This document shows positions 1,887-45,074 of a stretch of DNA of 64,000 nt, piece after piece. The stretch is from sequence record OQ411014.1, one strand, 5' to 3'. The notes under the pieces are model-generated. The model made no database searches, had not been told where the DNA came from, and was given only the letters and a program-made list of their open reading frames with translations. The position numbers and the translations under genes are program-made. Each line of letters opens with the position of its first letter. The stretch's first letter is position 1.

Positions 1887-2363
1887 ATGTTCGAATTTGA
1901 AGAAGAGATTTATTTTGATCCTTCTGAAGATGGCTATACACACCTAAATGCGTATAGTAAAGGACGTACACGTTTGGGGAGGATGCTATCTAATTTTGCA
2001 TACTCCCCATTTGTGTTTGAGCCGTATGGTCACTTCAAATCGATGGAAGGATTCTGGTACTGGTACTGTACTGGTCAGAAGCATGATATTCTAAGAACCC
2101 TAAGTGGGGCGAAGGCCAAAGCTGAAGGCCAGAAGTTTCCTAGAGTGATTACATCAATGTCCGATGAAGATATCAGTACTATTCAAGATGCTATGGTAGC
2201 GAAGATAGTACAGAATAGTGAAATCAAAGATGCGTTGATGAAGTGTAATCTTGAGATAGTTCATTACTATGTATATGCAGGTAGGGTTGTACGATTAGAC
2301 CAGAAAGATGATTGGTTCGCAGAAACGCTGAACATGATTCGTGATGCATTACAGGGTAAATGA
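1887..2363 (+). CDS. NADAR-like protein (T4 gp30.3-like ADP-ribose hydrolase fold)
   Basis: LSNFAYSPF...F.SMEGFW and LSGAKAKAEG resemble T4 gp30.3 LSNFAQWPF...F..LEGFL and LSGLAAQQAG. Confidence 0.6.
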   Translation: MFEFEEEIYFDPSEDGYTHLNAYSKGRTRLGRMLSNFAYSPFVFEPYGHFKSMEGFWYWYCTGQKHDILRTLSGAKAKAEGQKFPRVITSMSDEDISTIQDAMVAKIVQNSEIKDALMKCNLEIVHYYVYAGRVVRLDQKDDWFAETLNMIRDALQGK

Positions 2364-2389
2364 GATGAAATGAAAAATTGTGATATAAT
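2360..2389 (+). promoter_or_regulatory. class II promoter ATGAGA-18-TATAAT with TGTGA
   Basis: Same architecture at 7 sites in the window. Confidence 0.75.
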
Positions 2390-2395
2390 CCTAAT

Positions 2396-2905
2396 ACAAT
2401 ACCAGTCCTTCGGGCGATACGTTCCCAGATTCGAAAAGTAGATGATGGATGAGCATGATGGTACATGCGAGTGCAGAGATACCCGTACGCGGCGTTTACG
2501 GCACGTTAAAGGAGCTTTTAGGCAGATAGGCTCCCTAGATAGGTAAACTGAAGGTCAACTTCACCATAATGCTAAGGGAGGCTCATATGAGCCACATGTA
2601 CGTTTGATCGAATAGACTGTACATGAAGTGGGCTAAGACCCCGACCGTTGCACATGACTGTGATAGAGAGAAACAGAGCAACCCGCTTTCGTTTCCTGAC
2701 CATTTTAGTACGGGTAAGTTGTATCTAAAATTCAGGAAAATTCACAATTCGATAATTCCGATGCTACCAGCGTCAGATTTAACATCCCCCCGTGGGGGAT
2801 GAAAATACCTCATCAAACCTCGTCAGGATATAAAGTACTAAAAGTGAATTGAGTTACGATAGTAACGAAAATTCTTTGACAATCGTAAGATTGGCGAATC
2901 AGAAC
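2396..2905 (+). ncRNA. large structured ncRNA, copy 1 (ROOL/GOLLD size class; family unassigned)
   Basis: No credible ORF; own promoter; many stems; blocks of 30/34, 21/22 and 32/36 nt identity to 45085-45640 in the same order. Confidence 0.8.
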
Positions 2906-2930
2906 CTTTACAACAATACAGGAATGAAGT

Positions 2931-3167
2931 ATGATAACAGCAATATGTGAAATGGCTGACCAAGCCAGTGGTATAAAAGATGTTAGATTGATAGAAAACA
3001 CATTACAAGCTATGCAAGATTATGAAGACTATTGTGATGATCAGATCATGTGTGGTTTGGGTTTTTGTGTATATTTCTTTGATACCGAGAAAGATATGAA
3101 AGGCTGGTCAGAAGATGATGTATATGAGTTTATGCGTATTAACGCTCACTTGGAGATTGAAGTATGA
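2931..3167 (+). CDS. acidic hypothetical protein
   Basis: AGGA RBS; overlaps next gene (ATGA). Confidence 0.65.
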   Translation: MITAICEMADQASGIKDVRLIENTLQAMQDYEDYCDDQIMCGLGFCVYFFDTEKDMKGWSEDDVYEFMRINAHLEIEV

Positions 3168-4105
3168 CTGAACTAAACAGAGCTAAAGGAAGTCTAATTG
3201 GATTAGCAGTAGGTGATGCAGTTGGAACGACTTTAGAGTTCAAAGTACGTGATGTCAAAAACATCACCGATATGGTAGGTGGTGGTCCGTTTAACCTCGA
3301 CGTAGGCCAGTGGACTGATGACACTAGTATGGCTCTTTGTTTGGGTTATGCACTTTTGCAAAATCATAATGTCAATGATATTGTTGATAGTATCAAGTGG
3401 TCACAAGTACAATTAGACAACTATGTAAAATGGTACATGAACGGTTACTGTAGTTCTAATGGATATTGCTTCGATATCGGAAGTACTACTCAAAGTGCAT
3501 TGCGTGCTTATATGAAAGATGGTGTCATTCGTAACAACGATCATTTCTTGGATTCAGGTAATGGTAGTCTTATGCGTCTTGCTCCAATTGCATTGTACTA
3601 TAACGCAAAGAATGTAGAAGAGTTCACAACTCTAGTGTATGCTGCTGACCTAAGTAGTACTACTACACATGCCAGTACTTTATGCCGTGAATCTTGTGTT
3701 GCATTTTCAGTACTACTCAATCGTGCTATCAATGGTATCGACGATAAGACTAAACTACTTGACTTCCCACCATCACTATGGAACGGTTTGGTGTCAGAGA
3801 AGTTAGTACTGGATGTGTTGAACGGTTCGTATAAGAATAAGACTCGTGAACAAATTAGTTCAAGTGGGTATGTTATTGATAGCCTAGAAGCCGCTCTATG
3901 GGCCTTCTGGAACACCGATAACTTCCGTGACGCTATCCTATTGGCTGCTAACTTAGGCAACGATGCAGACACTGTAGCGGCGATTACAGGGCAGATTGCA
4001 GGTGCTTTCTATGGTCTTGATGGTATCCCTGATGAATGGGTACAGAAGATTACAGCCACAGATGAAATCCAACAACTAGCTGAGGCTTTGTATAATGCAA
4101 ATTGA
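3164..4105 (+). CDS. ADP-ribosylglycohydrolase (ARH/DraG family)
   Basis: GLAVGDAVG, GQWTDDTSM, GNGSLMRLAP and LGNDADTVAAITGQIAGA motifs. Confidence 0.92.
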   Translation: MTELNRAKGSLIGLAVGDAVGTTLEFKVRDVKNITDMVGGGPFNLDVGQWTDDTSMALCLGYALLQNHNVNDIVDSIKWSQVQLDNYVKWYMNGYCSSNGYCFDIGSTTQSALRAYMKDGVIRNNDHFLDSGNGSLMRLAPIALYYNAKNVEEFTTLVYAADLSSTTTHASTLCRESCVAFSVLLNRAINGIDDKTKLLDFPPSLWNGLVSEKLVLDVLNGSYKNKTREQISSSGYVIDSLEAALWAFWNTDNFRDAILLAANLGNDADTVAAITGQIAGAFYGLDGIPDEWVQKITATDEIQQLAEALYNAN

Positions 4106-4541
4106 TAAGATTGTGAATGTCAAAATCGCACCAGGTCATAAAGTAACAATTGAACATACTTCGGTCGATACGCGTGAAACAATCGAAGCAGTTGTATCAT
4201 GTTCTACGCTAGATAATGGAAAAGGTGTTGCAGTCTTCAGTACTGAAGATGGTCAAGTCTTTACATGGAAACCTTCATTTTCTTCTTCACATGGGGAAGT
4301 AGTTCGAATTGATTCTGCACGTCCAGATGTTCTCGTCAATGCTTATGTAAGAGCATTCAGTACTGAAGTCCAACAGTACCGTCCGGTGCATGTAAATAGT
4401 GGTGAGTACACGTATACTGAAAAAGTATGTGAAACGCATAACTGGAGTGAAGCACTAGCACCACACGGTGATCATATATGTCTTGATTGTCGTATGGTAG
4501 TAAATGATAAATTTGAATTTGGAGTGTACTATGGGGATTAA
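4095..4541 (+). CDS. hypothetical protein with C-terminal Cys/His cluster
   Basis: CETH...HICLDC; overlapping gene arrangement. Confidence 0.65.
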   Translation: MQIDKIVNVKIAPGHKVTIEHTSVDTRETIEAVVSCSTLDNGKGVAVFSTEDGQVFTWKPSFSSSHGEVVRIDSARPDVLVNAYVRAFSTEVQQYRPVHVNSGEYTYTEKVCETHNWSEALAPHGDHICLDCRMVVNDKFEFGVYYGD

Positions 4542-4542
4542 C

Positions 4543-4764
4543 ATGTCGTACTGTATGTTTGAGAATACAGTGCGAGCATTAGAAGAAGTGTTAGAAAAGA
4601 TGTGGGAGCCGGATTTTGATCCTGATTCACTATCTTCACATGAGCGTCGTGCTTATAACCAACTCTATGAAATGGGTTCCTCTATTCACGCAGCAATCGA
4701 CGAGATCGAGGAACGCAAATATGATGAAGAACTAGCTAAACTGGATAAAGAAGATGACGAATAA
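4543..4764 (+). CDS. hypothetical protein
   Basis: GGGG RBS before ATG 4543. Confidence 0.65.
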   Translation: MSYCMFENTVRALEEVLEKMWEPDFDPDSLSSHERRAYNQLYEMGSSIHAAIDEIEERKYDEELAKLDKEDDE

Positions 4765-4960
4765 CATCCAGATGCCTTATATTATCACTGAACGTACAGT
4801 GATTGACATTGCTTACAATCCAGAGTATGGTGATAGTCGTATGTGTACTTGTGGTCATACATATGCACGTCATTTTGATTCATATGAAGATATGGACCCT
4901 GAAGGATGTAAGTACTGTGGTTGTATTGAATTTGTTGAAAAACTAAATAAGGACTTCTAA
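4754..4960 (+). CDS. small Zn-finger protein
   Basis: CTCGH...H...CKYCGC. Confidence 0.65.
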   Translation: MTNNIQMPYIITERTVIDIAYNPEYGDSRMCTCGHTYARHFDSYEDMDPEGCKYCGCIEFVEKLNKDF

Positions 4961-5460
4961 TGAAATATTATATGCTAAATGCAACTGATGCTAGTGGTCA
5001 TGGTAAAACTAATTTTTCTTACATTGACTTATCTGATAATAGTACTTTGGATGATGCGAAAGAAATCTTCTTAGAAGAGAACCCGTGGATTCAGTTCCAA
5101 GAAGTTGCTCGCATTACTGCACTGGAAATCGACCACAAAACCTATAAGGCAGGTTTGGCATTCAATGAATATGCACAGTACTGTCAAGATAAAGAATACG
5201 ATGAAGTGTACCAAGCAGCAACTGGTGAACACCCGTACCGAAACCCTAAATACACAAACAATCGTCTGTGGGAGCACCATAATATGTTTCCTACACGCAA
5301 ATGGGCTGAGATGCTCGCAGATCCAACCAAACCAGTACTGATCGGTTATCCGAAGATGTTTTCTGTGTTCAAGATGGACGATAAACGAAACCTACATTTC
5401 GTATATCATCATAGCAGTACTATTGACTTCCGTGATGATGCACGATTTGTCAAACAGTGA
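4960..5460 (+). CDS. hypothetical protein
   Basis: TAATG coupling to the previous gene. Confidence 0.7.
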   Translation: MKYYMLNATDASGHGKTNFSYIDLSDNSTLDDAKEIFLEENPWIQFQEVARITALEIDHKTYKAGLAFNEYAQYCQDKEYDEVYQAATGEHPYRNPKYTNNRLWEHHNMFPTRKWAEMLADPTKPVLIGYPKMFSVFKMDDKRNLHFVYHHSSTIDFRDDARFVKQ

Positions 5461-5468
5461 GATAGATA

Positions 5469-5738
5469 ATGGCAGTAAGACGTTACCCTGGTATATTTGA
5501 GTACTACAATAGTACTCAATTTGAAGAACATACTCAAGACAGCACAGTACTGATTAATACGTACTGGATTTGTACTGACATGGACTTCATGAAAAGTATA
5601 AAACAAGGTGTGTGGCAATACCATAGCAATAAAGGTGTAGCTGAATCAATCAGTTCACAACTACCAGGAACGACAGTACGTTTTATGGAATTTGCATATA
5701 TACCAAAAGAACCAAAGAGGATTGACAATGCAAAATGA
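5469..5738 (+). CDS. hypothetical protein
   Basis: ORF in tightly packed operon. Confidence 0.6.
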   Translation: MAVRRYPGIFEYYNSTQFEEHTQDSTVLINTYWICTDMDFMKSIKQGVWQYHSNKGVAESISSQLPGTTVRFMEFAYIPKEPKRIDNAK

Positions 5739-6060
5739 AGAGTATATTATTAGGTGTGAATGTGGTGACAAGACCGACCATGTGATTCATATCGCACAGT
5801 ACGATATCGGTGAAGATTGTGGTGATGATTCAATGGGTCAATGTGTCGTGTCATTACGTTTAGACCCACGTGCTTTCTGGTACAAGCGTGTGTGGTTGGC
5901 GTTCAAATACATCTTCGGTATTGGTAATCATTACCAGTATGTTGATACGTATATTGATGTTCAGTCATTGAAAGAAGTTGCTGAATCTTTGAAAGATACT
6001 CGTTCCGATGAACACAAAGAAGAAGCAAAAACTGATAAGACCATTCCAAAGGTATACTAA
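5728..6060 (+). CDS. hypothetical protein
   Basis: GAGG RBS before ATG 5728. Confidence 0.65.
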   Translation: MQNEEYIIRCECGDKTDHVIHIAQYDIGEDCGDDSMGQCVVSLRLDPRAFWYKRVWLAFKYIFGIGNHYQYVDTYIDVQSLKEVAESLKDTRSDEHKEEAKTDKTIPKVY

Positions 6061-6245
6061 TGGACAATTCGAAAGAATATAAGTACTGTACAGAATGTAC
6101 TTATGCTTTCACGTTTATGTCCGATAGAATATGCCCTAATTGTGGTGAAATGGACAGTACTGAAATATGTACTCGTCCATCACAATCGATAGACATTAGT
6201 CGATACCTAACATTGAAAGCTATGAAAGGACGTAAACAGTGCTAA
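6060..6245 (+). CDS. small Zn-ribbon protein
   Basis: CTEC...CPNC. Confidence 0.6.
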   Translation: MDNSKEYKYCTECTYAFTFMSDRICPNCGEMDSTEICTRPSQSIDISRYLTLKAMKGRKQC

Positions 6246-6637
6246 ACATTTACAATGAACTAATTGAACTTGATTTTTTCAAGAATCCAGCCCGTAAGAC
6301 AAGTACTGAATCATTCTTTGAAAAAGAATTCATGATGCATCTAATGTTTGAAGATGAATACAGTGATGATTCAGTGAATAGTATTCTAGTAGTGAAGGAT
6401 TTATCTGAAGGAAATCTCTCACACATCAATGTCAGTACTAATCGCTGTATGCTCCAGTACTCCAATGATACTGGAATGATTGCTATTGTCAGAGCTAATG
6501 TTTCTGAAGATTTATTCGTACCAATAGCGTGTGATGAAGGTCAGTTCTTTCAGCTTATGGTACTGGAGGATTTGGGGAAGATTACACATGAATATGTGAA
6601 ATTAGTTCAAGATGTTTATGCAATTTTGAGCAAATGA
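6239..6637 (+). CDS. family A protein (C-terminal EExFQ motif)
   Basis: DEGQFFQLMVLED. Confidence 0.7.
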   Translation: MLNIYNELIELDFFKNPARKTSTESFFEKEFMMHLMFEDEYSDDSVNSILVVKDLSEGNLSHINVSTNRCMLQYSNDTGMIAIVRANVSEDLFVPIACDEGQFFQLMVLEDLGKITHEYVKLVQDVYAILSK

Positions 6638-6655
6638 AATATATTGTGATATAAT
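6626..6655 (+). promoter_or_regulatory. class II promoter TTGAGC-18-TATAAT
   Basis: TGTGA before -10; shared architecture. Confidence 0.7.
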
Positions 6656-6665
6656 AAGGATATGT

Positions 6666-7646
6666 ATGTACGATACGTGTTTTGTGAGTAACGCACCAAT
6701 CACCCCAGGTGACCATGTGAAGTTATTCTATATCGCTGAGAAACGTGATATTTACGATACGAATCCACCAATGAAAAATAAAGGTGCAGGACAAACGTCC
6801 TGTACTGAAGATTATCTCATCATTGGATTTCCGGTTGAAGCAGTATATGATGAAGATGGGGATTACCAACACATTGATTATCCTGGATTTGAAGCTGAAT
6901 ACGTTCGTGATGTGATCACATCTCATTTAGCTTACGGATTCAGTGCAGTGATTGATTTTGGTGAAGCAACGTTATATACTCTTGATAAAATCATTCAAGA
7001 TGAGCAATTGGTTGTATCTCGCAATGGTATCCGCTCAAGGGTTCATAGAGTTGCAGTACTGGATTATATCTATGAAACAGTCCAAGATACGATTGACCCA
7101 TTTATACTGAGTTCGAATTCGTTCAAGCATTTAGCTAAAGCGTCAGTGAAACATAGTTATGCAATGTCATCTAAGACTGAATCAGTACAGCAATGGGCTA
7201 CTGAAAATGATAAGTACGTAAAGTTAGAGAAGATTCAAGACGCACAGGCTGACCAGTTCAAGTTCATTCATGCACTTGATGTTGTGAATACTAAGATACG
7301 ACCATCGTCACAAGTCAGTTCCACATATCATTTGGATAAAATTGCTTCATATCATTTACGCCTAGCACAGATTATGTTGCAGAAAGAATCCAGATTCTAT
7401 GCAAATACAAAATTCAATTTACAAGTGTGTAAGTGCATTACTCTGAAAGATTTAGAAGAGTTCTTCACTAATCACTATGACAGCGAAGTATATGAGAATG
7501 GTCTTTATGCGATAGAACGCTATAAGGAGCTATTCCAGTACGAATCACTTTATCTGGATTATGAATCGAGTAAAGCCTTACGCTTTGAGGTATTCTTTGA
7601 AGCCGTTGACGATCCCACTGTTCCTATCAAAGTGATAGTTACATAA
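6666..7646 (+). CDS. hypothetical protein
   Basis: 326 aa ORF with AAGGA RBS. Confidence 0.75.
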   Translation: MYDTCFVSNAPITPGDHVKLFYIAEKRDIYDTNPPMKNKGAGQTSCTEDYLIIGFPVEAVYDEDGDYQHIDYPGFEAEYVRDVITSHLAYGFSAVIDFGEATLYTLDKIIQDEQLVVSRNGIRSRVHRVAVLDYIYETVQDTIDPFILSSNSFKHLAKASVKHSYAMSSKTESVQQWATENDKYVKLEKIQDAQADQFKFIHALDVVNTKIRPSSQVSSTYHLDKIASYHLRLAQIMLQKESRFYANTKFNLQVCKCITLKDLEEFFTNHYDSEVYENGLYAIERYKELFQYESLYLDYESSKALRFEVFFEAVDDPTVPIKVIVT

Positions 7647-7718
7647 AAATTTACAATTATATGTAAATACGTACAGATGTAGAGGTTTTTTCTTTACATC
7701 TGTGCTATGGGAGAATAA

Positions 7719-8045: not shown

Positions 8046-8047
8046 TA

Positions 8048-8605: not shown

Positions 8606-8613
8606 ATAAATTT

Positions 8614-8643
8614 TTGAACATTTCAGAAAAAATGTGATATAAT
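8614..8643 (+). promoter_or_regulatory. class II promoter TTGAAC-18-TATAAT for tRNA-Thr
   Basis: TGTGA before -10; followed by 5' hairpin tacaggaga/tctcctgta (8649-8673). Confidence 0.75.
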
Positions 8644-8681
8644 ATAAGTACAGGAGATGAGAGTTCTCCTGTAACAAATTA

Positions 8682-8754
8682 GCTTGAATAGCTCAGTAGG
8701 TAGAGCAGCGTACTTGTAATACGAAGGTCGTGGGTTCAATTCCTGCTTCAAGCA
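8682..8754 (+). tRNA. tRNA-Thr(TGT), CCA not encoded
   Basis: Acceptor gcttgaa/ttcaagc, loop ct-tgt-aa, T-loop ttcaat. Confidence 0.92.
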
Positions 8755-8792
8755 TTTATTCATACGATGATAATAAAAAATAAATATAGTCC

Positions 8793-10521: not shown

Positions 10522-10530
10522 GGATATATA

Positions 10531-16126: not shown

Positions 16127-16405
16127 ATGCATTTCGAAAAATTCAACGCAAACCGTAACACACGTATTGAAATGTTGTTTGAAACTCAAGATACTATCAG
16201 TATTTGTACTAAGAGTGGTGATGTTTACCATGAATGTACTATTGAGTGGGAACAAGGCCGAACACGTTCTGTTGAGTTTGACAACTACCATTTCAAACAA
16301 GGCGACCGCAAGATCTGGCCTGAACTGGTAGAAAGCATTGCATATGAAGATGAAGATAAAGAATCTTTTATCAAAGAAAATCCAGAAAATGATGAAGATT
16401 TTTGA
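16127..16405 (+). CDS. hypothetical protein
   Basis: AGGA RBS. Confidence 0.65.
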   Translation: MHFEKFNANRNTRIEMLFETQDTISICTKSGDVYHECTIEWEQGRTRSVEFDNYHFKQGDRKIWPELVESIAYEDEDKESFIKENPENDEDF

Positions 16406-16431
16406 GCATTTTGAAGAAAATGTGATATAAT
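16402..16431 (+). promoter_or_regulatory. class II promoter TTGAGC-18-TATAAT for tRNA-Ser/Arg
   Basis: Shared architecture. Confidence 0.75.
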
Positions 16432-16485: not shown

Positions 16486-16576
<91 letters not shown>

Positions 16577-16689
16577 GTTTTCAAAAGGTAGCCGAAAGGC
16601 AAGTTTATAGGATTTACGGATAGTTATAAATCTGAATTGACAGCAACTCCTAACAGAGTTACTATCCGCTCCTATCTTTTCTTAATCCA

Positions 16690-16764
16690 CGGGGTATAGC
16701 TTAATGGATAAAGCAGTAACCTTCTAAGTTATTGATCTAAGTTCGATTCTTAGTATCCCGACCA
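16690..16764 (+). tRNA. tRNA-Arg(TCT)
   Basis: cggggta/tatcccg, gtaac-ct-tct-aa-gttat, CCA encoded. Confidence 0.92.
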
Positions 16765-18573: not shown

Positions 18574-19092
18574 ATGAAAGAGCTTATTGAACGTGTAGAT
18601 TTCTTTGAACTGATTGCATTGGAATTTGATCCAGAATGTACTGATATTCTTTCAGATGTACCAATCTTCCCTATTGAAAACGATGATGGTACTTCATCGT
18701 ACTTAGAAGATTACGAAGATTATTTGCGTAGCTTCTGTCCAACATCAAACGATAAAGTGCATCTCTTTACTGAAATTATTCATGTACAATACAATACAAA
18801 TAATAAAGAAATTGTATTATGTGCAATGGATACATTCAACAGTACTGAAGCTGGTATTGCACGTGAGTATGCTAAACTATATCTCATTGATACAGGTGAG
18901 TATTGTAAACTTACCATCAAGGAAAATTCATTTATATTCAATAACAAAGAATATAAGCTAGGTACTACTGAAGAAGAGAACTTCCAGATTTCATGTACTG
19001 ACATGGGTTACTTCAATAATGTAGTAAATGAAGTAAAGAAATTTATTCTTCAAGATATTGACAAGAATGGATTACCTGAGTATAATAAATAA
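18574..19092 (+). CDS. family A protein
   Basis: TTEEENFQISCTD; start at 18574. Confidence 0.7.
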   Translation: MKELIERVDFFELIALEFDPECTDILSDVPIFPIENDDGTSSYLEDYEDYLRSFCPTSNDKVHLFTEIIHVQYNTNNKEIVLCAMDTFNSTEAGIAREYAKLYLIDTGEYCKLTIKENSFIFNNKEYKLGTTEEENFQISCTDMGYFNNVVNEVKKFILQDIDKNGLPEYNK

Positions 19093-19101: not shown

Positions 19102-19191
19102 AGAAGGTTGGCAGAGCGGCTAAATGCACTCGCCTACTAAGCGAGCACTCGCTCCGGCGAGTCGAGGGTTCGAATCCCCCACCTTCTGCCA
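19102..19191 (+). tRNA. tRNA-Ser(ACT), unusual A34 anticodon
   Basis: agaaggt/accttct, ctcgc-ct-act-aa-gcgag, long variable arm actcgc/gcgagt, G73-CCA. Confidence 0.88.
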
Positions 19192-28909: not shown

Positions 28910-28939
28910 ATGAGACAAACTGGAAAATTGTGATATAAT
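28910..28939 (+). promoter_or_regulatory. class II promoter ATGAGA-18-TATAAT
   Basis: Shared architecture; followed by a two-hairpin leader (acatc/gatgt, gcgttcaa/ttgaacgc). Confidence 0.75.
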
Positions 28940-29036: not shown

Positions 29037-29258
29037 ATGGCTAACGAACTAAACCAAACCGCAGTAATCGCTGACATTTCCGATGTAGAACGTACCATGA
29101 ACTACATTCAATTCCAACTAAGTCAAGCAGATGCTGAATTGGCTACCTTTGCTGGTACAGATGCTAAGAAAATCTGTTATGTTCACCTACTTGCTTGGAA
29201 GCAAGAGCTACAAACTGAACTACATGAACTACGCAAAGCTCTAAAGCGTAAAGCATAA
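29037..29258 (+). CDS. small helical protein in its own transcription unit
   Basis: AAGGA RBS; promoter upstream, terminator downstream. Confidence 0.75.
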   Translation: MANELNQTAVIADISDVERTMNYIQFQLSQADAELATFAGTDAKKICYVHLLAWKQELQTELHELRKALKRKA

Positions 29259-31834: not shown

Positions 31835-32170
31835 ATGATGTTAGAACTACTAGAAACAATCCTGTACGCAGCTAGAGCAGAACGATATGATAAACTCGAT
31901 GCACTAGCACCTAAAGTGTTTTATGGTCGAGAAGGTGATGCGATATTGTCCTTTACTATCATGACAGAAGAAAACTTTTCTATCATGATTAGGGCAACAC
32001 ACGTCATTGACTGTCGTTGTAAAAACTGGTCTGACGCAACATTGAAGTACGGTTACAAGGAAGATGAATTCTTCTTAGAATCACTCAAGCGTGAAATACA
32101 TTTTTCCTATGAAGAATATCTACTTGCACAAAAAATTTCAGAAGTTCTAAAAAGACTCGCATATAAATGA
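31835..32170 (+). CDS. family A protein
   Basis: YKEDEFFLESLKRE. Confidence 0.7.
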   Translation: MMLELLETILYAARAERYDKLDALAPKVFYGREGDAILSFTIMTEENFSIMIRATHVIDCRCKNWSDATLKYGYKEDEFFLESLKREIHFSYEEYLLAQKISEVLKRLAYK

Positions 32171-32196
32171 GAAATTTAGGATAAATGTGATATAAT
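32167..32196 (+). promoter_or_regulatory. class II promoter ATGAGA-18-TATAAT
   Basis: Shared architecture. Confidence 0.75.
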
Positions 32197-32204
32197 ATAA
32201 TTAT

Positions 32205-32312
32205 TAGGGACATTCGTCCCAACCGCCCTCACTGAAGCATGGTCAGACTCAGTGAGCACACTACGGGTGCTCTGACTGGTAAATGGAGGCTACCATAGAT
32301 GTAGCCTCCAAT
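32205..32312 (+). ncRNA. candidate ~105 nt pseudoknotted small RNA
   Basis: Own promoter; GC-rich; stems gggac/gtccc, ctcactga/tcagtgag, loop ggtcaga pairing with tctgact, final ggaggctac/gtagcctcc. Confidence 0.6.
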
Positions 32313-32338
32313 TTATCCTTAAACAAAAGGAGAGCAAA

Positions 32339-32785
32339 ATGAAATTCAACAAAATTCAGTTAGTGTTTGAAAACTGTGAAACTTTAGTTATTAATGCATC
32401 TGATATTGTTACATTGAAGACTTCACCAGCCCAAACTTCTTATCACAAGAACTACGGTAACAGTATCATTGAAGAACATGAAATCAAACACATCTTCCTG
32501 GCAGTGAAGAATGGCACTAAGGCTGATCCTGATTCTGTGTCATGGGACGATGACAGTACTGTGCGATTCCGTAATGACGTTACGAACATTACCTTCATTA
32601 GTGATAATGAAAGTAAAAACTACGTAGTTCGTTGGGAAGAGAGTAATACTAATAATTACTCATCTGCGTATCAGCGTTGCACAACCACTCTAGATGGTCA
32701 TCAAGTCTGGATCAACTCATCTGATGTTATTATGGATTTGCAAATTTCTGACGTTGATGAGTTAGCATCGTTTATGAATATCTAA
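32339..32785 (+). CDS. hypothetical phage protein
   Basis: AGGAG RBS. Confidence 0.75.
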   Translation: MKFNKIQLVFENCETLVINASDIVTLKTSPAQTSYHKNYGNSIIEEHEIKHIFLAVKNGTKADPDSVSWDDDSTVRFRNDVTNITFISDNESKNYVVRWEESNTNNYSSAYQRCTTTLDGHQVWINSSDVIMDLQISDVDELASFMNI

Positions 32786-35788: not shown

Positions 35789-36929
35789 AATCTTTTCCAG
35801 CAATTACGATAGAACCAGCAAACCCATCGAGGGCTGTTAGTACTATATCATCTGCGTCATTAACCTGAACCTGAACAGTACAAACTGATGTACCATCATA
35901 TACAGTATATGACATATTGGATTTACCATGTTGTGCTTTGGTAATAGAAGCACTTGAGGAACCATCACCATTTGGTGTCCATGATAGAGCAGAACGGAAT
36001 GGAACACTTTGAGATGTTTTACCAATAATAACAACAACAGCGGCAGACGCAGCACTTTGTGTAACAGTAATGTTACCACTTGCATCTACGTCTACAGTAC
36101 TGAATTGTACTGCGTCATCTTGAGGTTCATGTAACTGAACAACCAGGTCCGCACCACGTCCGTGAATGATAGCAGGAACAGTAGCTTTGTACTGACCATC
36201 TGATTGTATTGCAAAATCAGCAGGAGCAATGTTGATTGAAGTTACATAGTCAGAATCAGCACCATCTGCATATACAGGGAATTGTACTTGAATTTCATTG
36301 TAATTCGGTGAAGTAATTGTTATAGTAGCTGTACCAGTTTGGGAGATAACCACTGGAGAAATACTGAATGTTCCATCTGGATTAACAGTACCTTCATATT
36401 CAGAACCATCTGGTAGAACAATTTTAACAACCATATCAGTAACGTCTAGAGCACCCGAACTAGAGGTGATAGCACCACTAATTTCAGTATCATTAACGTG
36501 AACTGGATTGATTACGATGTTGTCAATATCTGGTAGAGGGATAGTACATGTAGGTGTGTACATATCATAAAGCGTTTTACCAGTACTGAGAATTATTTTG
36601 TTCAATAGGAAACGAATGACGAAACCTTCCTTGGTCTTTTGATCATTGTAACCCCTTACAAAGAAGGTATTGCGTGGAATCTTAGCCAAGATTTGATCGT
36701 TATTTTCTAGATAATCCAGAACTCTACCCTCGGTGTCATAACCAGTGAGTAGTACTTTTTGATAAATTGTGTTTGTCGCAGGATCAATAAGGTCGAACAT
36801 TACATCAGAACGTTGTTTGTATATACGTAACATCTTTTTCTTTGTAAAGTCTCGCAGATATGCCCCATCAACTACAAATCCACAAACCCCATAAGGATAA
36901 TCCCCAACCCCAGCTATCGGTTTAGCCAT
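35787..36929 (-). CDS. putative virion protein with Ig-like/beta-sandwich domains
   Basis: GGAG RBS before ATG 36929; PVHVNDTEISG...GTVNPDGTFSI resembles bacterial Ig-like repeats; two similar C-terminal H.K/G repeats. Confidence 0.6.
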   Translation of the reverse strand: MAKPIAGVGDYPYGVCGFVVDGAYLRDFTKKKMLRIYKQRSDVMFDLIDPATNTIYQKVLLTGYDTEGRVLDYLENNDQILAKIPRNTFFVRGYNDQKTKEGFVIRFLLNKIILSTGKTLYDMYTPTCTIPLPDIDNIVINPVHVNDTEISGAITSSSGALDVTDMVVKIVLPDGSEYEGTVNPDGTFSISPVVISQTGTATITITSPNYNEIQVQFPVYADGADSDYVTSINIAPADFAIQSDGQYKATVPAIIHGRGADLVVQLHEPQDDAVQFSTVDVDASGNITVTQSAASAAVVVIIGKTSQSVPFRSALSWTPNGDGSSSASITKAQHGKSNMSYTVYDGTSVCTVQVQVNDADDIVLTALDGFAGSIVIAGKD

Positions 36930-37049
36930 AGATAAACTCCTTTTTTTGTTTTTCATTATGAACGTATTTACCCCTTGACATGTGATTATGCTTGTATTAT
37001 GATACATGCATTGATTGACGCACATGTAATAAAGAACATTAAATGTGTG

Positions 37050-37078
37050 TTGACAGTACTGAATGACTGCTCTATAAT
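37050..37078 (+). promoter_or_regulatory. sigma70 promoter TTGACA-17-TATAAT
   Basis: Perfect consensus; AGTACT overlaps -35. Confidence 0.85.
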
Positions 37079-37123
37079 ACTTACATCAACTACGAACTTA
37101 AAGAAACCATAAGGAATACTAAA

Positions 37124-37702
37124 ATGACTACTCGCTTAAAAATCGTTGACAACAAAATGTCCATCAGCCTGTTCAAAGACGAAGCTGATTCTTACATGGC
37201 TAAAGCAATGGCTAAATCACAGCGTTATAACAACATGCTGAATGGTCGTAAAGCTCCTTACGGTCAGAACCACCCACACAGCCACTACGTTGGTATGGTT
37301 GCTGAACACGCTACTTTAGTACTGATGGAAGAAATCGAACAGCTTCTGAACATTGATATGAAAATCGATGCAGTGTTCCTGGACGACAAGCGTGACAAAG
37401 AATGTGATATCGTTGTGAATGGTCTGCGTATTGAAGTAAAATGCATCAAGTACGGTTCATGGGTAAAATTCGGCCCTTGCATTACTGCCGCTCAACGTAA
37501 GAACATTGAACGCAAAGCTGATGTAGTACTGTGGGCTGTATACAACGAACGTAAACAATCCTTTACGTTTGAAGGTTTCAACCGTGTAGAAGACATTGCT
37601 AACATCCCAACTGAAATGACTGGTGTCCAAGGTCGTGAGAAGATCGAAAACCATCCAGTAATGAGTATCATCAAACCTTTACAGGAGATGCAATTTTGCT
37701 AA
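37124..37702 (+). CDS. PD-(D/E)XK nuclease-like protein
   Basis: GMVAE helix, CDIVVNGLRIEVKC (D..EVK), ADVVLWA. Confidence 0.6.
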   Translation: MTTRLKIVDNKMSISLFKDEADSYMAKAMAKSQRYNNMLNGRKAPYGQNHPHSHYVGMVAEHATLVLMEEIEQLLNIDMKIDAVFLDDKRDKECDIVVNGLRIEVKCIKYGSWVKFGPCITAAQRKNIERKADVVLWAVYNERKQSFTFEGFNRVEDIANIPTEMTGVQGREKIENHPVMSIIKPLQEMQFC

Positions 37703-38252: not shown

Positions 38253-38258
38253 GGCTCT

Positions 38259-38723: not shown

Positions 38724-38780
38724 ACATATACTTTGAGTGTGTTATAATACAGTCATCAAATAACAAGAAGAGAGGTTTAT

Positions 38781-39230: not shown

Positions 39231-39279
39231 TGTAGTCCCTCCTTAACTGGGGGGATTTAAACACATAAGGACAAAATAA

Positions 39280-39705: not shown

Positions 39706-40199
39706 ATACGTATATCAGTGGGTTTTACAAGTACTACCTATCGTTCATAACTATATTTGCTATTCTGTTATTGAATGAAACAGAACAATTTGGATCAAAA
39801 TTCCTATCAGAAGGACTAGGAATCTTCCTTCAGGTTATCTTTGCACTGATGGCTGCTATATCAATGCCAGTACTGATCTATGGTATTCATCTTGTTGCGA
39901 GCGATGACCAGGATAGTAAGGACTCGTGTATCCGTGAGTACTGCCAAGCAGCAAAATACAGTACTATAAGTTCTATGATACCGTTTAGTCTAATTATTGT
40001 GTCCATCGCTATGTTCCAATGGAATCTGTGGTTCTTGGGTACGTTTGGATTTATTATGGGTTGTAGTATGTACGTGTATACTAAAGTACTATACAGAGGT
40101 GAGAAACTATTCACTGAAATGGAAGCCCGTAAAGGAACCAAAGCACCAGTTCAACGAGAAGAGCGAGATTATTTCGCACCAGACGATGAGTTACCTTGA
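39702..40199 (+). CDS. multi-pass membrane protein
   Basis: About 4 hydrophobic segments. Confidence 0.7.
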   Translation: MNTYISGFYKYYLSFITIFAILLLNETEQFGSKFLSEGLGIFLQVIFALMAAISMPVLIYGIHLVASDDQDSKDSCIREYCQAAKYSTISSMIPFSLIIVSIAMFQWNLWFLGTFGFIMGCSMYVYTKVLYRGEKLFTEMEARKGTKAPVQREERDYFAPDDELP

Positions 40200-40224
40200 C
40201 ACGTACCTGAAGAGTAGCTATAAT
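40196..40224 (+). promoter_or_regulatory. sigma70 promoter TTGACA-17-TATAAT
   Basis: Perfect consensus. Confidence 0.85.
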
Positions 40225-40259
40225 ACTTTCATTGAAGCGAAACTAACAAAGGAAACATA

Positions 40260-40514
40260 ATGGATACCGTACAGATTGAATCTTTGACTTCACTTGTTCT
40301 TGATAATGTAAAAGCTGAAGAAGAAATTTCAGTACAAATCAAAGCAGAGTATCAGTGCATTACTGAAAAGCTCCAAGATGCGAAGTACACTGTAACGAAA
40401 GAAATTGAAGAGCATTATAAGAACATTGAACGTCTGTTCCGTGTCAAGCAAGAACACATTGTTCGTCAGAATAACGCTAAGACTGCAATCAATAAACTTC
40501 TGGGAATCGCATAA
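40260..40514 (+). CDS. coiled-coil hypothetical protein
   Basis: AAGGA RBS. Confidence 0.7.
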   Translation: MDTVQIESLTSLVLDNVKAEEEISVQIKAEYQCITEKLQDAKYTVTKEIEEHYKNIERLFRVKQEHIVRQNNAKTAINKLLGIA

Positions 40515-40993
40515 TGAAAAACGTACAACAATACATTCAGAACTTCACCGCATATCCAGTATCAGTAATGTTCGGACATATCGATACACCTACTCCTAAG
40601 CAGAAGAAAGCGGAGAAACGTGTAGCAGAAATCTGTGAAGAACTGTATCGTTTTGATTGTACAGTACTATCAGATGTGCGAGCAGCATTCCGCGAGTTAG
40701 ATGTTCTTATCTCCTTGAGTGATGATAAGTTCCGCATCAAGCAAGTGCGTCTAACTCGTATGACTGGTCGTTTGGCATATTTTGTTGACAAAGCGGTTGT
40801 AATGCTCGATAATATGCACAAGAAAGACCAGCAACTTCAGCAGTACTGGCAACCGCTGTCAATGAAAGCTAAAGTACTGAAGGATGAAATCAAATCATTC
40901 CTTATCCAGTACGATACTTCAGTTGATAAGATTGTATTACTGTCTGAATTTGACAATGCATACAAAGAAGCCCAAGAGGAAGATAAGAAATGA
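40514..40993 (+). CDS. helical hypothetical protein
   Basis: TAATG coupling. Confidence 0.7.
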   Translation: MKNVQQYIQNFTAYPVSVMFGHIDTPTPKQKKAEKRVAEICEELYRFDCTVLSDVRAAFRELDVLISLSDDKFRIKQVRLTRMTGRLAYFVDKAVVMLDNMHKKDQQLQQYWQPLSMKAKVLKDEIKSFLIQYDTSVDKIVLLSEFDNAYKEAQEEDKK

Positions 40994-41490
40994 CAACTGT
41001 TTTCGTGAGTAAAGAATTAGGAATTGCTATTACTGACTCACGAGCCACGTTTCAAGAGTCCAGGAAGTTTCTTGGGCTTTTTAACTTGACTCCATTACCA
41101 TCGTATAAAGTTGTGAATCAAAAGGCTTTGTATGTTCATGACCGTTTATTCTTAGCATGTGGAAGTGTAGATACTATTGATAAAGTATTGCAATATTTCA
41201 TCGACGGTACTAAGTTCAAGATAAACAAGAAAACTCCAAGCTGTGAGTGTCTTCTTCTTGGTAAAGAATACGGTGTACACTTGTACGTGTGGAATGGTAA
41301 GATTCATAAGAAGACTATCTTCTTGGCGTATAATTTTGTACACTTCATGGGGTCTGGTAGTTCTGCCCTACTCAGAAAGTACTACAAGACTTTAGAACGT
41401 AATACACCAGATGAAGTTATTGATATTTTCAAGACTGTACATTTGGATGATAGCTTCACTGACGATAACGTAAATTTATACAGAATCTAG
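40990..41490 (+). CDS. Ntn-hydrolase (HslV/proteasome beta-like) protein
   Basis: MTT start, DSRAT, CGS, FMGSGS and D..T near the end. Confidence 0.55.
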   Translation: MTTVFVSKELGIAITDSRATFQESRKFLGLFNLTPLPSYKVVNQKALYVHDRLFLACGSVDTIDKVLQYFIDGTKFKINKKTPSCECLLLGKEYGVHLYVWNGKIHKKTIFLAYNFVHFMGSGSSALLRKYYKTLERNTPDEVIDIFKTVHLDDSFTDDNVNLYRI

Positions 41491-41519
41491 TTGACAGTCT
41501 AAAAGAGATATCATATAAT
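41491..41519 (+). promoter_or_regulatory. sigma70 promoter TTGACA-17-TATAAT
   Basis: Perfect consensus. Confidence 0.85.
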
Positions 41520-41710
41520 CATTGCATACCACAACGAGAGAGAAACAAAATGAGTACATTCATCGTAGAATATGTTCTGACTGGTCAAAGCATCTGGCAG
41601 GTACAAATGGTAAAAGCATGTAATAAAGAGCAAGCCCAGAGCACGCTCAAGAAAATGATTTCTGGTGTAGTAACCACCAAAGCATACCCAGCATAATTTA
41701 GAGCTATAAT

Positions 41711-41739
41711 GAATCCGCTCTGTGCGGATTCTTTTTTTT
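41711..41739 (+). terminator. terminator upstream of the sigma gene
   Basis: gaatccgc/gcggattc plus T8; a TATAAT lies just 5' of it. Confidence 0.8.
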
Positions 41740-41758
41740 AATATCAAAGGAGAAAGTA

Positions 41759-42751
41759 ATGACTGTAAAACAACTCAATCTAGAATCTATTCAAGACGAT
41801 ATCATGGATGAATGTTTTGTAAATGAAAACAATACGTTCGAGCGTATTAGTGAACAGTCACATGACAGTACTGAAGAAGTAGAAGAAAGTACTGATGACG
41901 TAGGTTCTTTCAAGACTTACAACACATCTAGCGTTTTACCAGAAGGTGAGACGAATGAATCTATTATTCGTTTAATCCGTGACGGTATCAATGTGAAGCG
42001 TAACATTGACCTTATCGTACGTAACAACGTAGGCTTAGTATATAGCCAAGCACGTCAGTGTACTTGTAATATCCCATTCCAAGATAAAGCACAGTACGCT
42101 TTTGAAGGTCTAATGCGTGCAATCCATCGTTATGATGTGAATCAGAATATTCTTTTCAGTACTTACGCTACTGTGTCTATTCGCCAAACACTCTATAACT
42201 TTGGTAATGATGAAGTTCGTCTAATCAGTATTCCACGTCACTTGTCAGTGGATAACATCAAGATTCAGAACTACATTGAGAAGCATCGTTCTAAGTTCGG
42301 TCGTACCCCAAGTGAAGATGAAATCAGTACTGCTACTGGCATCAAGTTATCCGCAGTGAAACGTGTAGTGCAGTACATGAACAGTAAGCCAATGAGTTTC
42401 GATACTCCAATGGGTTCTGACAGTACTGAAAACGATATGAGCTTAGTGGATGTAATCCCAGGAACTTCCAATGATTACACACTAAGTGCAGATACAGTTC
42501 AGAAAGCACCACTAGATGTAATTGCATTGGTCATGTCTGAACTACCAGAAGAAGAGCAGTTGCTGATCAATAAGATTCACGGCTTGAATGGACATGAAGA
42601 AAGTACTTTTATTGCTCTAGAGACTGCTGGATTGGTAGATGCGAAGGGTAAGAAGCTAACTAACCGTTGCACTATTCATCGTCGTTACAATGCAATACTG
42701 GATAAGATTCGTAATATTCTAAAAGCACGTGACATTTCATTCGATGACTGA
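41759..42751 (+). CDS. RNA polymerase sigma factor, sigma70 family
   Basis: Region 2 NVGLV, GLMRAIHRYD, FSTYAT.SIRQ, RLISIPRH; region 3 GRTPSEDEIS; region 4 remnants. Confidence 0.9.
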   Translation: MTVKQLNLESIQDDIMDECFVNENNTFERISEQSHDSTEEVEESTDDVGSFKTYNTSSVLPEGETNESIIRLIRDGINVKRNIDLIVRNNVGLVYSQARQCTCNIPFQDKAQYAFEGLMRAIHRYDVNQNILFSTYATVSIRQTLYNFGNDEVRLISIPRHLSVDNIKIQNYIEKHRSKFGRTPSEDEISTATGIKLSAVKRVVQYMNSKPMSFDTPMGSDSTENDMSLVDVIPGTSNDYTLSADTVQKAPLDVIALVMSELPEEEQLLINKIHGLNGHEESTFIALETAGLVDAKGKKLTNRCTIHRRYNAILDKIRNILKARDISFDD

Positions 42752-42915
42752 TATGATTCGTTACAAGGCAAACAAAGTACAAGGAACTGCTGTTGTAGTT
42801 TTCTTGTACTGGACTGAGAATCCGGTCTATGTTCTGGCAGAGAACAGTACTGTATCGCTGTCGGAGTTCATTGATATAGCAATTGAAGAATTCAAATCAT
42901 TAGAGGAATAATACT

Positions 42916-43287
42916 ATGTTGCACAAAGTTGAAGGTTCAAAGCACAATTGGATTGACGAATACGATATCTATGTTGGGTATGATACTTCCCCGTGTTGTT
43001 GTGAATATGCGGATTACTTCTTGAGTTATGAGATTGAGAGGAATGGAGTACCAGACGAAGAACTAATTGATAAAAGTACTTTCAAATGGGAAGAATACGA
43101 CTTCTATCCATTCGCATCTGCACTGATCGAAAACGTCCCAGGACTTGATGAAGGTGCTATTGCGATGTTCCCAATGATCCACAAAACGACTTCCCGTATG
43201 GTGTACTTGCACTTGTTTAACGCTCACAATGGTTATTACAGCCACGGGTTCGAAAGCAATACATTCATTGGTAACGGTTCTTTATAA
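42916..43287 (+). CDS. hypothetical phage protein
   Basis: GAGG RBS; CCCE and HNGYY motifs. Confidence 0.7.
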   Translation: MLHKVEGSKHNWIDEYDIYVGYDTSPCCCEYADYFLSYEIERNGVPDEELIDKSTFKWEEYDFYPFASALIENVPGLDEGAIAMFPMIHKTTSRMVYLHLFNAHNGYYSHGFESNTFIGNGSL

Positions 43288-43475
43288 GGAATTTTTGTGA
43301 AAACTAAAAACTCAAAATCTTTAGGTACATATGTGAATGGTAATCGCTATGCGAAAATCAGTACATGTATTGATTGCAGTACTGGAAATACTTTATACTA
43401 TTACTGTATTCCTGGTGAGCGGGTGTATATCAGTTCAGAAGAATTCAAGAATGAATGGGTAAAAAACTAAAACAA

Positions 43476-43509
43476 AATGCTTGACTTCGGTCGAGCATTC
43501 TTTTAATAT
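43476..43509 (+). promoter_or_regulatory. terminator/promoter hybrid cassette
   Basis: aatgcTTGACttcggtcgagcatt plus T-tract; TAATAT at a 17 bp spacer. Confidence 0.7.
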
Positions 43510-43549
43510 AATTGCATCAACTACACTACTACACTTGAGGATAACAATC

Positions 43550-43990
43550 ATGGCTTGGATTCACAGCAATCATTCTGAACTGAACAATTTCGATATCTTT
43601 GCATTCGTGAACATGCAAGAGAAGATCTTCATCAAAGGACGTCTCTGCACGCTCTCTGACGGCTCACGGGCCATCTGTAACATGAACAACAAGGGTGAAG
43701 TACTGGATATCGTTGCTCTTCCTGCGTGGGCTACTGTGCAGCCTGAAGAGGCACTTATGCGTCTACTCTTTGAAGAGATTGGTAAACTTCCAGGTACTGA
43801 TGTGGAGAACAAACTCTTCAACATCAAACACTCCAAGTACAGTGCTGACCAATTATCTGGTTTAACTGATACAGTACTGAAAGAAGTTGTAAGTAATCAA
43901 TGTAACGTAATTCTTAAGTACGTTCCTGAACTGGAACTGACTGAAGAAATGCTAGTGGAATTTGACATCAACGCTAAGGGTTCTCTATGA
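43550..43990 (+). CDS. early hypothetical protein
   Basis: GAGGA RBS before ATG 43550. Confidence 0.75.
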   Translation: MAWIHSNHSELNNFDIFAFVNMQEKIFIKGRLCTLSDGSRAICNMNNKGEVLDIVALPAWATVQPEEALMRLLFEEIGKLPGTDVENKLFNIKHSKYSADQLSGLTDTVLKEVVSNQCNVILKYVPELELTEEMLVEFDINAKGSL

Positions 43991-44349
43991 GACTAATCCT
44001 GTTACTGATTTTGTTAGTAACTGCACAGACGATACCATCTGATTCATATATCGATATAAATCCAGCACGTGAGTTCATTATTTGTACAGACAGAGTAGAC
44101 AGTACTAAAAAGATTGAAGTCCTCTTCGATTCAAGTACTCCAGAATATGTAGTGACGAACAAAGTACAGTACAAATTCATTTCTCACGAAGTTATTGGGG
44201 ATGTAGATGTACTTCAATATAAGTTCGGTTCAAAGACTATGAATTTTGAATTTATTATGCAAGGTGATAAAGTATCTTCTATTCGATTGGAAGTACTTGG
44301 TGCTATCCCTGGTATGGAATTCATGGATGGGGAGTGTAAACTGCTATGA
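43987..44349 (+). CDS. putative exported protein
   Basis: Signal-like N-terminus; Cys pair; beta-rich. Confidence 0.65.
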   Translation: MRLILLLILLVTAQTIPSDSYIDINPAREFIICTDRVDSTKKIEVLFDSSTPEYVVTNKVQYKFISHEVIGDVDVLQYKFGSKTMNFEFIMQGDKVSSIRLEVLGAIPGMEFMDGECKLL

Positions 44350-44690
44350 TTTCAGTACTGAATAGTATTAGTATTGTTGTTATGATTTTAGCCTGTACCT
44401 ACGCTATCCTAGCTGGGGTGCTCATCTTCTACAAGAAGACTAAGTTCTTGGGGTGGTTACAGATAAGTAAAACTGGCTATTGTTTTGTGTACGGAATAAG
44501 TGCCTTTTGTATATACAGGGATTTATTTTTAGGAGTACTTCCTCCTGATTTCAATGGGTACAACTTTAGTGCAGTGTTCTTATTGTTTTATATTGTACTT
44601 ATTGTGCTTGGTCTTTGTATACCGTATGTACTTATAGTTGGTGTTTCAAAGGTACTTGAGTACCGTAAACGTATTCCTGATGAGGATTGA
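44346..44690 (+). CDS. 3-TM membrane protein (paralog of 44694 and 54750)
   Basis: Three TM segments, ends RKRIPDED. Confidence 0.7.
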   Translation: MISVLNSISIVVMILACTYAILAGVLIFYKKTKFLGWLQISKTGYCFVYGISAFCIYRDLFLGVLPPDFNGYNFSAVFLLFYIVLIVLGLCIPYVLIVGVSKVLEYRKRIPDED

Positions 44691-44693
44691 TAA

Positions 44694-45023
44694 ATGAAGA
44701 TGGAAGACTTAGTAGAACTATTACAGCCGTACGCTACAGTACTATTTTTGATTGCTTCAATGTATACTGTTGTAACTCTAGTACTTGGATTCTTCAAGTA
44801 TCGAACACTAGCTAAACGCTTAGACGAGAACTTATGGCTCTCTGTTCCTAGTATCTTTAGTGTAGCTATTAGTATTGCAAACTATTTTATTGAAGATCGT
44901 ATGTTCGCTGCTATTATGTTATTATTTGTTTTGGTTGGGGTAACATTTGTAGGTACTATCTATGCAATGTGTAAAGGATTTGTGTACGTTCGTTCCAAGA
45001 TACCAGATCCAGAACAAGAATAA
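44694..45023 (+). CDS. 3-TM membrane protein
   Basis: Three TM segments, ends RSKIPDPEQE. Confidence 0.7.
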   Translation: MKMEDLVELLQPYATVLFLIASMYTVVTLVLGFFKYRTLAKRLDENLWLSVPSIFSVAISIANYFIEDRMFAAIMLLFVLVGVTFVGTIYAMCKGFVYVRSKIPDPEQE

Positions 45024-45031
45024 TTCTAATT

Positions 45032-45074
45032 AATGCTCACTTCGGTGAGCATTTTTTTTATTTTGTGATATAAT
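45032..45074 (+). promoter_or_regulatory. UUCG terminator whose 3' arm supplies the -35 of a class II promoter (GTGAGC-18-TATAAT)
   Basis: aatgctcac-ttcg-gtgagcatt, T-tract, tgtga-tataat. Confidence 0.8.

Follow-up and report, generated by a model that had tools for sequence, protein, structure and literature searches.

Escherichia phage EJP2 (OQ411014.1, 349,185 bp, filed under Asteriusvirus) is a coliphage of 349 kb and belongs to the Rak2/121Q-like jumbo phages. A stretch of 64,000 nt of its genome, hereafter the window, raises the question of whether EJP2 carries a second class of promoters besides the ordinary TTGACA-type promoters and, if so, which genes these promoters serve and which protein reads them. 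The window holds a long array of small + strand genes (function unknown), six transfer RNA (tRNA) genes and one annotated RNA polymerase sigma factor gene (41759-42751). We refer to the ordinary promoters as class A, and to the sites in which a TGAGA-like box precedes the 11-mer TGTGATATAAT as class B. It is very probable that the class-B sites are functional promoters forming a class of their own.

The sequence of the window is identical to that of the record, and its position 1 is record position 248,001. Coordinates are those of the window unless the record is named. For whole-genome counts, the remainder of the EJP2 record was joined to the window and both strands were scanned.

Architecture of the class-B sites

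The first-pass annotation of the window had reported seven copies of a composite signal, and this count was reproduced. The 11-mer TGTGATATAAT, which consists of TGTGA and the -10 hexamer TATAAT, occurs exactly seven times, always on the + strand (positions 2379, 6645, 8633, 16421, 28929, 32186 and 45064). Shuffled sequences contained it 0.16 times on average and twice at most. A hexamer of the form DTGARM lies exactly 13 nt 5' of the 11-mer in all seven cases, as had been claimed, and the composite pattern is expected 0.00 times. The seven hexamers also agree with those listed earlier, and none of them is TTGACA. The complete sites, all on the + strand, are 2360..2389 (box ATGAGA at 2360-2365, TGTGA and TATAAT at 2379-2389, predicted start at about 2395-2397), 6626..6655 (TTGAGC), 8614..8643 (TTGAAC), 16402..16431 (TTGAGC), 28910..28939 (ATGAGA), 32167..32196 (ATGAGA) and 45045..45074 (GTGAGC). 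At three of them the TGA of the box doubles as the stop codon of the upstream gene (2361-2363, 16403-16405 and 32168-32170). The ordinary promoters of the window are as previously described: about 20 intergenic TTGACA/T-N16-18-TATAAT sequences, 30-40 nt 5' of ribosome-binding sites.

A genome-wide motif scan, which had been proposed as a check on the class, found 25 exact copies of TGTGATATAAT on the + strand and none on the - strand. The box stands in the same register at all 25 sites. Its positions 2 to 6 are T in 24, G in 25, A in 23, G in 23, and A in 19 or C in 6 of the sites, and C was found at position 5 in none of them. Both parts of the 11-mer are exact in 25/25 sites. The consensus can be written as w-TGAGA, an A-rich (A/T-rich) spacer of 13-14 nt, TGTGATATAAT and A; positions -17, -16 and -13 are invariant among the sites. 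A looser scan added about five variant sites with TATGA, TCTGA, TGTGC or AGTGA ahead of the -10 hexamer. All class-B sites are intergenic or overlap the last codons of the upstream coding sequence (CDS), and all are co-oriented with the genes. The sites thus have the features of an extended -10 (TGn/-10) promoter of the sigma70 family, namely TG at -15/-14, TATAAT and co-orientation with a downstream gene. The sequence upstream of the sites is 72% A+T, compared with 62% for the genome.

The box and the TGTGA element are tightly coupled. The + strand has 310 TATAAT hexamers in all. The strict box [ATG]TGAG[AC] accompanies 20 of the 25 that carry TGTGA but only 3 of the 285 others (Fisher p = 6e-24), and these three exceptions are TG-containing variants. 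Conversely, exact TTGACA at 16-18 bp was found at 34 of the 285 other sites and at none of the 25. These two facts bear out the earlier claim of a distinct promoter class. Judged by these counts, the class is a discrete two-part signal under selection and not the tail of the TTGACA class. When the 25 sites are compared in pairs, identity in the flanks, in the spacers and further downstream equals the expectation from composition. Because the flanks are unrelated, a copied cassette is ruled out as the source of the motif.

Genes behind class B and the reader of the box

The class had been described as mainly driving RNA genes. This description fails genome-wide, where RNA units stand behind only 9 of the 25 exact sites and the rest precede protein genes. 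The bias toward RNA genes is a sampling effect of the window. The nine sites comprise two tRNA units, five copies of one large non-coding RNA (ncRNA) family and two less certain small RNAs (sRNAs) or leaders.

In the window, five sites had been placed before RNA genes. Four of these assignments stand: tRNA-Thr (TGT; 8682..8754, + strand) behind the site at 8614, the unit of tRNA-Ser (TGA) and tRNA-Arg (TCT) (16487..16764, + strand, genes at 16487 and 16690) behind the site at 16402, and both large ncRNAs behind the sites at 2360 and 45045. The fifth, called an sRNA at 32205, is a strongly structured 5' segment of about 110 nt (32203..32320, + strand; z = -4.9) behind the site at 32167, with a hairpin at 32207-32220 and a stem-loop (32284-32310) that has a weak T tract behind it. 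This segment may be either an sRNA or a leader/attenuator of the CDS at 32339-32785; a homologue outside EJP2 was searched for and not found. Several transcripts had also been said to begin with a hairpin. The hairpin at 32207-32220 is present in the fold, whereas those at 8649-8673, ahead of tRNA-Thr, and at 2405-2415 come from reading the sequence alone. The correspondence between RNA genes and class B is not strict, because another tRNA-Ser gene (19102-19191) lies behind an ordinary TTGACA-N17-TATAAT promoter with its -10 hexamer at 19081. For this gene ARAGORN gives the anticodon ACT, and its Rfam tRNA score (47.9 bits) is the lowest of the six.

The remaining two sites of the window, at 6626 and 28910, precede protein genes. 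Downstream of the latter is the CDS at 29037-29258 (phrog_15704, function unknown). Behind the former, only about 3-5 nt separate the predicted start from the annotated ATG at 6666. Here (6650-6668) and at record positions 215,916-215,936, the start codon is only 10-14 nt past the -10 hexamer, and an AGGA-type ribosome-binding sequence lies at or before the predicted start. The 14-nt distance between the -10 hexamer and the start codon is kept in the orthologues of three phages (EJP2, Munch and TH47). Such genes would have either near-leaderless mRNAs or misplaced start codons.

The protein genes behind class B in the whole genome include operons of replication, recombination and nucleotide metabolism. 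A gene for a gp32-like single-strand-binding protein (Pfam gp32), followed by a recombination protein gene, stands behind two class-B sites. Other sites precede a primase gene (phrog_47) followed by a gene annotated as DNA primase/helicase, a PD-(D/E)XK nuclease gene, gyrB and gyrA, a gene for a ClpA-like ATPase, and an operon for DHFR, RNase HI and a RecD-like helicase. Two targets are small genes, one lying two genes 5' of the clamp-loader (RFC) gene and the other 2 kb 5' of thymidylate synthase on the same strand. A further target, EJP02_240, encodes a gp55-type late sigma factor (phrog_12791, E = 6e-148) and has the gp47/gp46 nuclease genes downstream; it occupies record positions 165,669-166,532, where the annotation reads hypothetical protein only. 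The variant sites precede genes for a pol I-like exonuclease and glutaredoxin, and a small gene 5' of DNA polymerase. At the two ends of the genome (record 0-36 kb and 294-349 kb), where arrays of small early genes have class-A promoters at high density, the genome scan found no class-B site. A third motif, ATAAATA, which resembles the T4 late promoter, precedes structural genes on both strands (for example upstream of record positions 179,455, 109,286 and 154,887). By analogy, the class-B set looks like a T4-style middle or delayed-early regulon.

The box was then compared in related phages at the replication modules, using Salmonella phage Munch, the 121Q-like phage TH47 and one RaK2-like Klebsiella phage. 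For eight class-B sites of EJP2 the downstream gene has orthologues in these relatives, and a box with TGnTATAAT was found at a similar distance before 8/8 orthologues in Munch, 7/8 in TH47 and 4/7 in the RaK2-like phage. The box itself differs between lineages, and so does the C-terminal helix of an RpoD-like sigma factor, which is encoded by all the phages compared. EJP2 has the box TGAGA and the helix NRCTIHRRY. Munch-like phages have TGGGAC and SRTSLHRCY, and 121Q-like phages (TH47) have nnG(A/G)GAC, in which the first two bases are not conserved, and SRSSIHRKY. The RaK2-like box is TGAAC with the helix VRGTLHYKF, while BF, the Yersinia and Erwinia phages, CBB and GAP32 share TGAAAC and SKATLSRRY. 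With RaK2 as an exception, and across few and related lineages, G-rich boxes occur where the helix contains R/H, and the A-rich box where it is of the K/S type. This co-variation of helix and box is suggestive only. That the box has changed in concert at many orthologous promoters suggests that its reading protein has changed as well. Since the box varies by lineage while host sigma70 is assumed to be constant, the reader is probably a phage-encoded protein.

The best candidate in EJP2 is the product of EJP02_431 (41759..42751, + strand), which contains sigma regions 2, 3 and 4. The protein aligns with Taq SigA from region 2 through region 4, and Pfam recognizes regions 2 and 3. Its predicted fold is made up of three helical domains and aligns with sigma-S and SigA along some 270 columns. 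In comparison with SigA, the TG-contacting histidine of region 3.0 is kept, the WW of region 2.3 is replaced by VS, and the recognition residues of the diverged region 4.2-like helix are replaced. An ordinary class-A promoter, TTGACA-N17-TATAAT, lies 248 nt 5' of the gene (41491..41519, + strand), and the sigma factor could therefore be made early. No clear promoter was found within 300 nt 5' of the sigma gene in 12 other phages.

These observations can be brought together in one scheme. Host sigma70 would read TTGACA-N16/17-TATAAT (class A), driving the arrays of small early genes including the gene for the phage RpoD-like sigma factor. This sigma factor would then bind host core polymerase and read class B, its region 2 recognizing TATAAT, the histidine of region 3.0 the TG, and the diverged region 4 helix the TGAGA box. 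Class B would in turn drive the operons that serve DNA replication, recombination or the metabolism of nucleotides. Its other targets would be the gene for the gp55-like late sigma factor, the two units of tRNA genes and the five structured RNAs. Promoters of the ATAAATA type before structural genes would form the third tier. With moderate confidence, we consider class B as a whole to be a middle regulon read by the phage RpoD-like sigma factor on host core polymerase; the transcription starts, the timing and the protein that reads the box are what we infer here. The first-pass annotation had suggested a middle-stage regulon read by the phage sigma factor or by sigma70 with a phage activator, and this suggestion is plausible, as it fits the regulon content, the lineage-specific boxes and the comparison of sigma factors.

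Several points weigh against this scheme. Region 4 of EJP02_431 received no Pfam call, and the structure model is modest (predicted local distance difference test score 63, from 13 sequences, with IMG/VR sequences) and informs on domain layout only. The match of helix and box involves about four non-independent lineages, and RaK2, with an R..H helix and the box TGAAC, breaks the simple rule. That sigma70 of these enterobacterial hosts is essentially identical in region 4.2 is background assumed here. The T4 replication genes are also reached from early promoters, so that regulon content alone leaves the timing unfixed. The sole public sequencing run containing the phage and typed 'RNA?' is probably DNA; its depth is 2-10, its contigs are short and transcription starts are unreadable in it. 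In addition, a consensus -10 hexamer with TG is by itself a strong sigma70 promoter, and 23 of the 25 sites combine an 18-bp spacer with a box in which 4-5 of the 6 bases agree with TTGACA.

The last two facts lead to the strongest of the other explanations, in which unaided host sigma70 reads the sites as very strong extended -10 promoters that are active from the start of infection. Class B would then reflect promoter strength and not timing or a different reader. TGnTATAAT is present at all sites, and the A+T-rich sequence upstream could act as a UP-like tract. Typical clients of very strong promoters, tRNAs and ncRNAs, are found among the targets. Promoters with TGn and a -10 hexamer need no contact at -35, and T4 early promoters combine all of these elements (PMC2988021). 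Several facts speak against this explanation. C is never found at position 5 of the box, although TTGACA is freely used elsewhere in the genome. The 121Q-like phages keep GAC at positions 5-7 of the box but not the TT. The box also shifts in concert at orthologous promoters between E. coli and Salmonella phages, and class B is absent from the terminal arrays of early genes. Moreover, sigma70 shows little preference at positions -17, -16 and -13, which are invariant in class B. It is therefore rather unlikely, while still a serious contender, that sigma70 alone accounts for the class.

A second explanation retains sigma70 and lets a phage activator or appropriator bind the TGAGA box in the manner of T4 MotA/AsiA, with the phage sigma factor serving another set of promoters. 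The regulon content and the stringent -10 hexamer do resemble T4 middle promoters, half of which also carry TGn, and TGn/-10 promoters remain active when a phage anti-sigma factor blocks recognition of the -35 element (PMC2988021). CBB also encodes a helix-turn-helix regulator two genes 5' of its sigma gene. In EJP2, by contrast, domain scans covered the seven neighbours of the sigma gene product and ten other proteins, and none of the seven showed a DNA-binding domain; nor was another abundant sigma70-type motif seen that the phage sigma factor could serve. The box lies 18 bp from the -10 hexamer, which is the -35 position, and not at the 12±1 bp of the MotA box. TGCTT is present in that region in 0/25 sites, and the genome has a single match to the composite MotA pattern on each strand, which is the background level. 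The MotA box (a/t)(a/t)(a/t)TGCTTtA at 12±1 bp, the mark of a T4-type MotA-dependent middle promoter, is absent from all 25 sites. We regard an activator acting with sigma70 as unlikely. Finally, a non-promoter nature of the motif, whether as a repeat arisen by chance, as part of a copied cassette or as a binding site without a role in initiation, is extremely improbable, given seven copies against 0.16 expected, intergenic positions co-oriented with the genes at all 25 sites, unrelated flanks, orthologous positions kept in other genera and canonical promoter geometry.

A structured RNA family behind class B

Large CDS-free stretches stand behind five class-B sites, at record positions 36,757, 90,691, 170,490, 250,379 and 293,064. 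The last two are in the window (2364-2930 and 45024-45654) and contain homologous structured RNAs, copy 1 at 2396..2837 and copy 2 at 45081..45555, both on the + strand. The other three copies occupy record positions 36,774-37,319, 90,708-91,233 and 170,507-171,013. The five copies are paralogues with 68-93% identity in blocks. A search with the core pattern recovered 21 further copies in jumbo-phage contigs of IMG/VR, including 121Q, BF and a Yersinia phage. RNAalifold applied to 22 aligned copies gave 70 pairs, of which 41 show compensatory double changes. Some copies contain an internal insertion that resembles a terminator hairpin.

In Rfam 15 only the tRNAs of the window reach the gathering threshold, and both large RNAs gave only chance-level matches at E values up to 10. 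The ncRNAs 001, 002 and 004 of PA5oct, which were defined by RNA sequencing, showed no similarity to a profile of the EJP2 family. Homology and covariation together indicate that a structured RNA family of about 450 nt is real, is present in multiple copies per genome and extends across several jumbo-phage genera. As far as these tools show, the family is undescribed so far.

The promoters had been said to lend independent support to the ncRNA calls, and the foreign copies agree with this. A promoter of the class-B type lies 265-396 nt 5' of the RNA core at 17 of the 21 foreign loci, in the same place as in EJP2, and at these 17 loci it is the lineage's own version, TGAAAC, TGGGAC or TGAGA. 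At four loci of BF/Yersinia-like phages, the first element of the class-B transcript would be a G+C-rich hairpin with TTTTTT behind it, as in a terminator or attenuator.

In the public run of uncertain type mentioned above, the word depth rises to 124 at 2500-2699 from 2-10 on either side, and the contigs are branched at 2633-2693. The peak lies within copy 1, and abundant RNA, a multi-copy core or repeat, or a mixture of related phages are possible causes.

The function of the five paralogues may be considered in two ways. The RNAs are spread around the genome (36.8, 90.7, 170.5, 250.4 and 293.1 kb of the record), and toward the 3' end all of them share a conserved G-run/C-run element, behind which lies an A/T-rich stretch. 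They might be origin or primer RNAs, which would act like ColE1 RNA II or like the T4 oriF/oriG transcripts from middle promoters. We regard this as improbable. If it were true, the pair of class-B sigma factor and box would control the initiation of replication besides middle gene expression. As a more modest alternative, the RNAs may represent a new class of large phage RNA with a possible catalytic or scaffolding role.

Related systems, other signals and implications

A class of this kind has a precedent. Buttimer et al. predicted with MEME a 'divergent RpoD-like promoter' (Promoter 1) at 18 sites of Pectobacterium phage CBB, most of them before DNA-synthesis genes and one before a gp55-like gene, and noted the same motif in Cronobacter phage GAP32 (PMC5259590). 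The EJP2 sites share with this class a non-TTGACA box that starts 18 nt 5' of T(A/G)TGnTATAAT, in the same register as in CBB Table S6 (PMC5259590), and the concentration before genes for DNA synthesis and the gp55-like sigma factor, in phages of the same group; in both cases the promoters are predicted. They differ in the box (TGAGA in EJP2, TGAAACG in CBB) and in being far more uniform, with an identical 11-mer at 25 sites. Judged by the shared motif and register, the EJP2 class is a member of the promoter class already predicted in CBB and GAP32. What is new in comparison with the CBB paper is the link to tRNAs, the link to the five-copy structured RNA and the change of the box from lineage to lineage; the conservation of the promoters at orthologous positions is also added here. 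The 11-mer TGTGATATAAT was not found in the literature in a phage context, and the papers on EJP2 and phAPEC6 contain no promoter analysis.

Class B resembles T4 middle promoters in its regulon of replication, recombination and nucleotide metabolism, its stringent -10 hexamer, the frequent TGn and a phage element that replaces the -35 element (PMC2988021). It differs from them in the lack of a MotA box and in the element standing at the -35 position (18 bp) instead of at 12±1 bp, and EJP2, unlike T4, encodes a full sigma factor of the sigma70 family. It has TGnTATAAT, here in the TGTGn form, in common with the extended -10 promoters known from E. coli and with those of the TRTGn '-16 region' type in Gram-positive bacteria; a plain extended -10 promoter, however, has no conserved, lineage-specific non-consensus box at a fixed distance and no invariant positions -17, -16 and -13. 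By analogy with SPO1 gp28 and phiEco32 gp36, an early phage sigma factor would redirect host core polymerase to a second class of promoters. In those systems both promoter elements are non-host, whereas EJP2 keeps the host consensus at the -10 hexamer and departs from host promoters in the -35-like box only. The -35 elements of extracytoplasmic function (ECF) sigma factors are TGAAAC/GGAAC, with an 'AAC motif', and the TGAAAC box of the BF/CBB lineage is presumably identical to the -35 element of Bacillus sigma-W. Unlike in the ECF systems, the -10 hexamer of EJP2 is of the sigma70 type with TG, and the phage sigma factor has region 3, which ECF sigma factors lack.

Some further signals were recorded in the EJP2 genome. 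The hexamer AGTACT occurs 1312 times compared with 116 expected, and the palindrome CAGTACTG occurs 425 times genome-wide compared with 4 expected, 86 of these in the window. This signal often stands directly 3' of the TTGACA box or of the -10 hexamer, and its role may lie in protein binding, in modification or in signalling at the RNA level. Several palindromic hexamers are wholly absent from the genome, among them AAGCTT (0 compared with 116 expected), CAGCTG, AGCGCT and CGATCG, and this absence would fit the avoidance of restriction sites. At four places in the window (about 55090-55125, 61235-61270, 61970-62005 and 62800-62835), ordinary promoters have their -35 element TTGACT inside a terminator hairpin with a TTCG loop (GGGTTGACTTCGGTC...), so that the terminator and the next promoter overlap.

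Animal guts commonly harbour Rak2/121Q-like jumbo phages, which are also candidate agents for phage therapy. To our knowledge, the transcription programme of these phages has never been mapped, and a transcriptome of an enterobacterial Rak2-like phage was not found in the literature. Class B yields a testable model with three tiers, sigma70 promoters, class B and gp55-type late promoters, and it offers a candidate job for the RpoD-like sigma factor that all these phages carry. The lineage-specific boxes and sigma helices would form natural orthogonal pairs of sigma factor and promoter, and thus a system in which the evolution of -35 recognition could be followed. In addition, class-B promoters point the way to a family of large structured RNAs that is conserved, multi-copy and outside Rfam.

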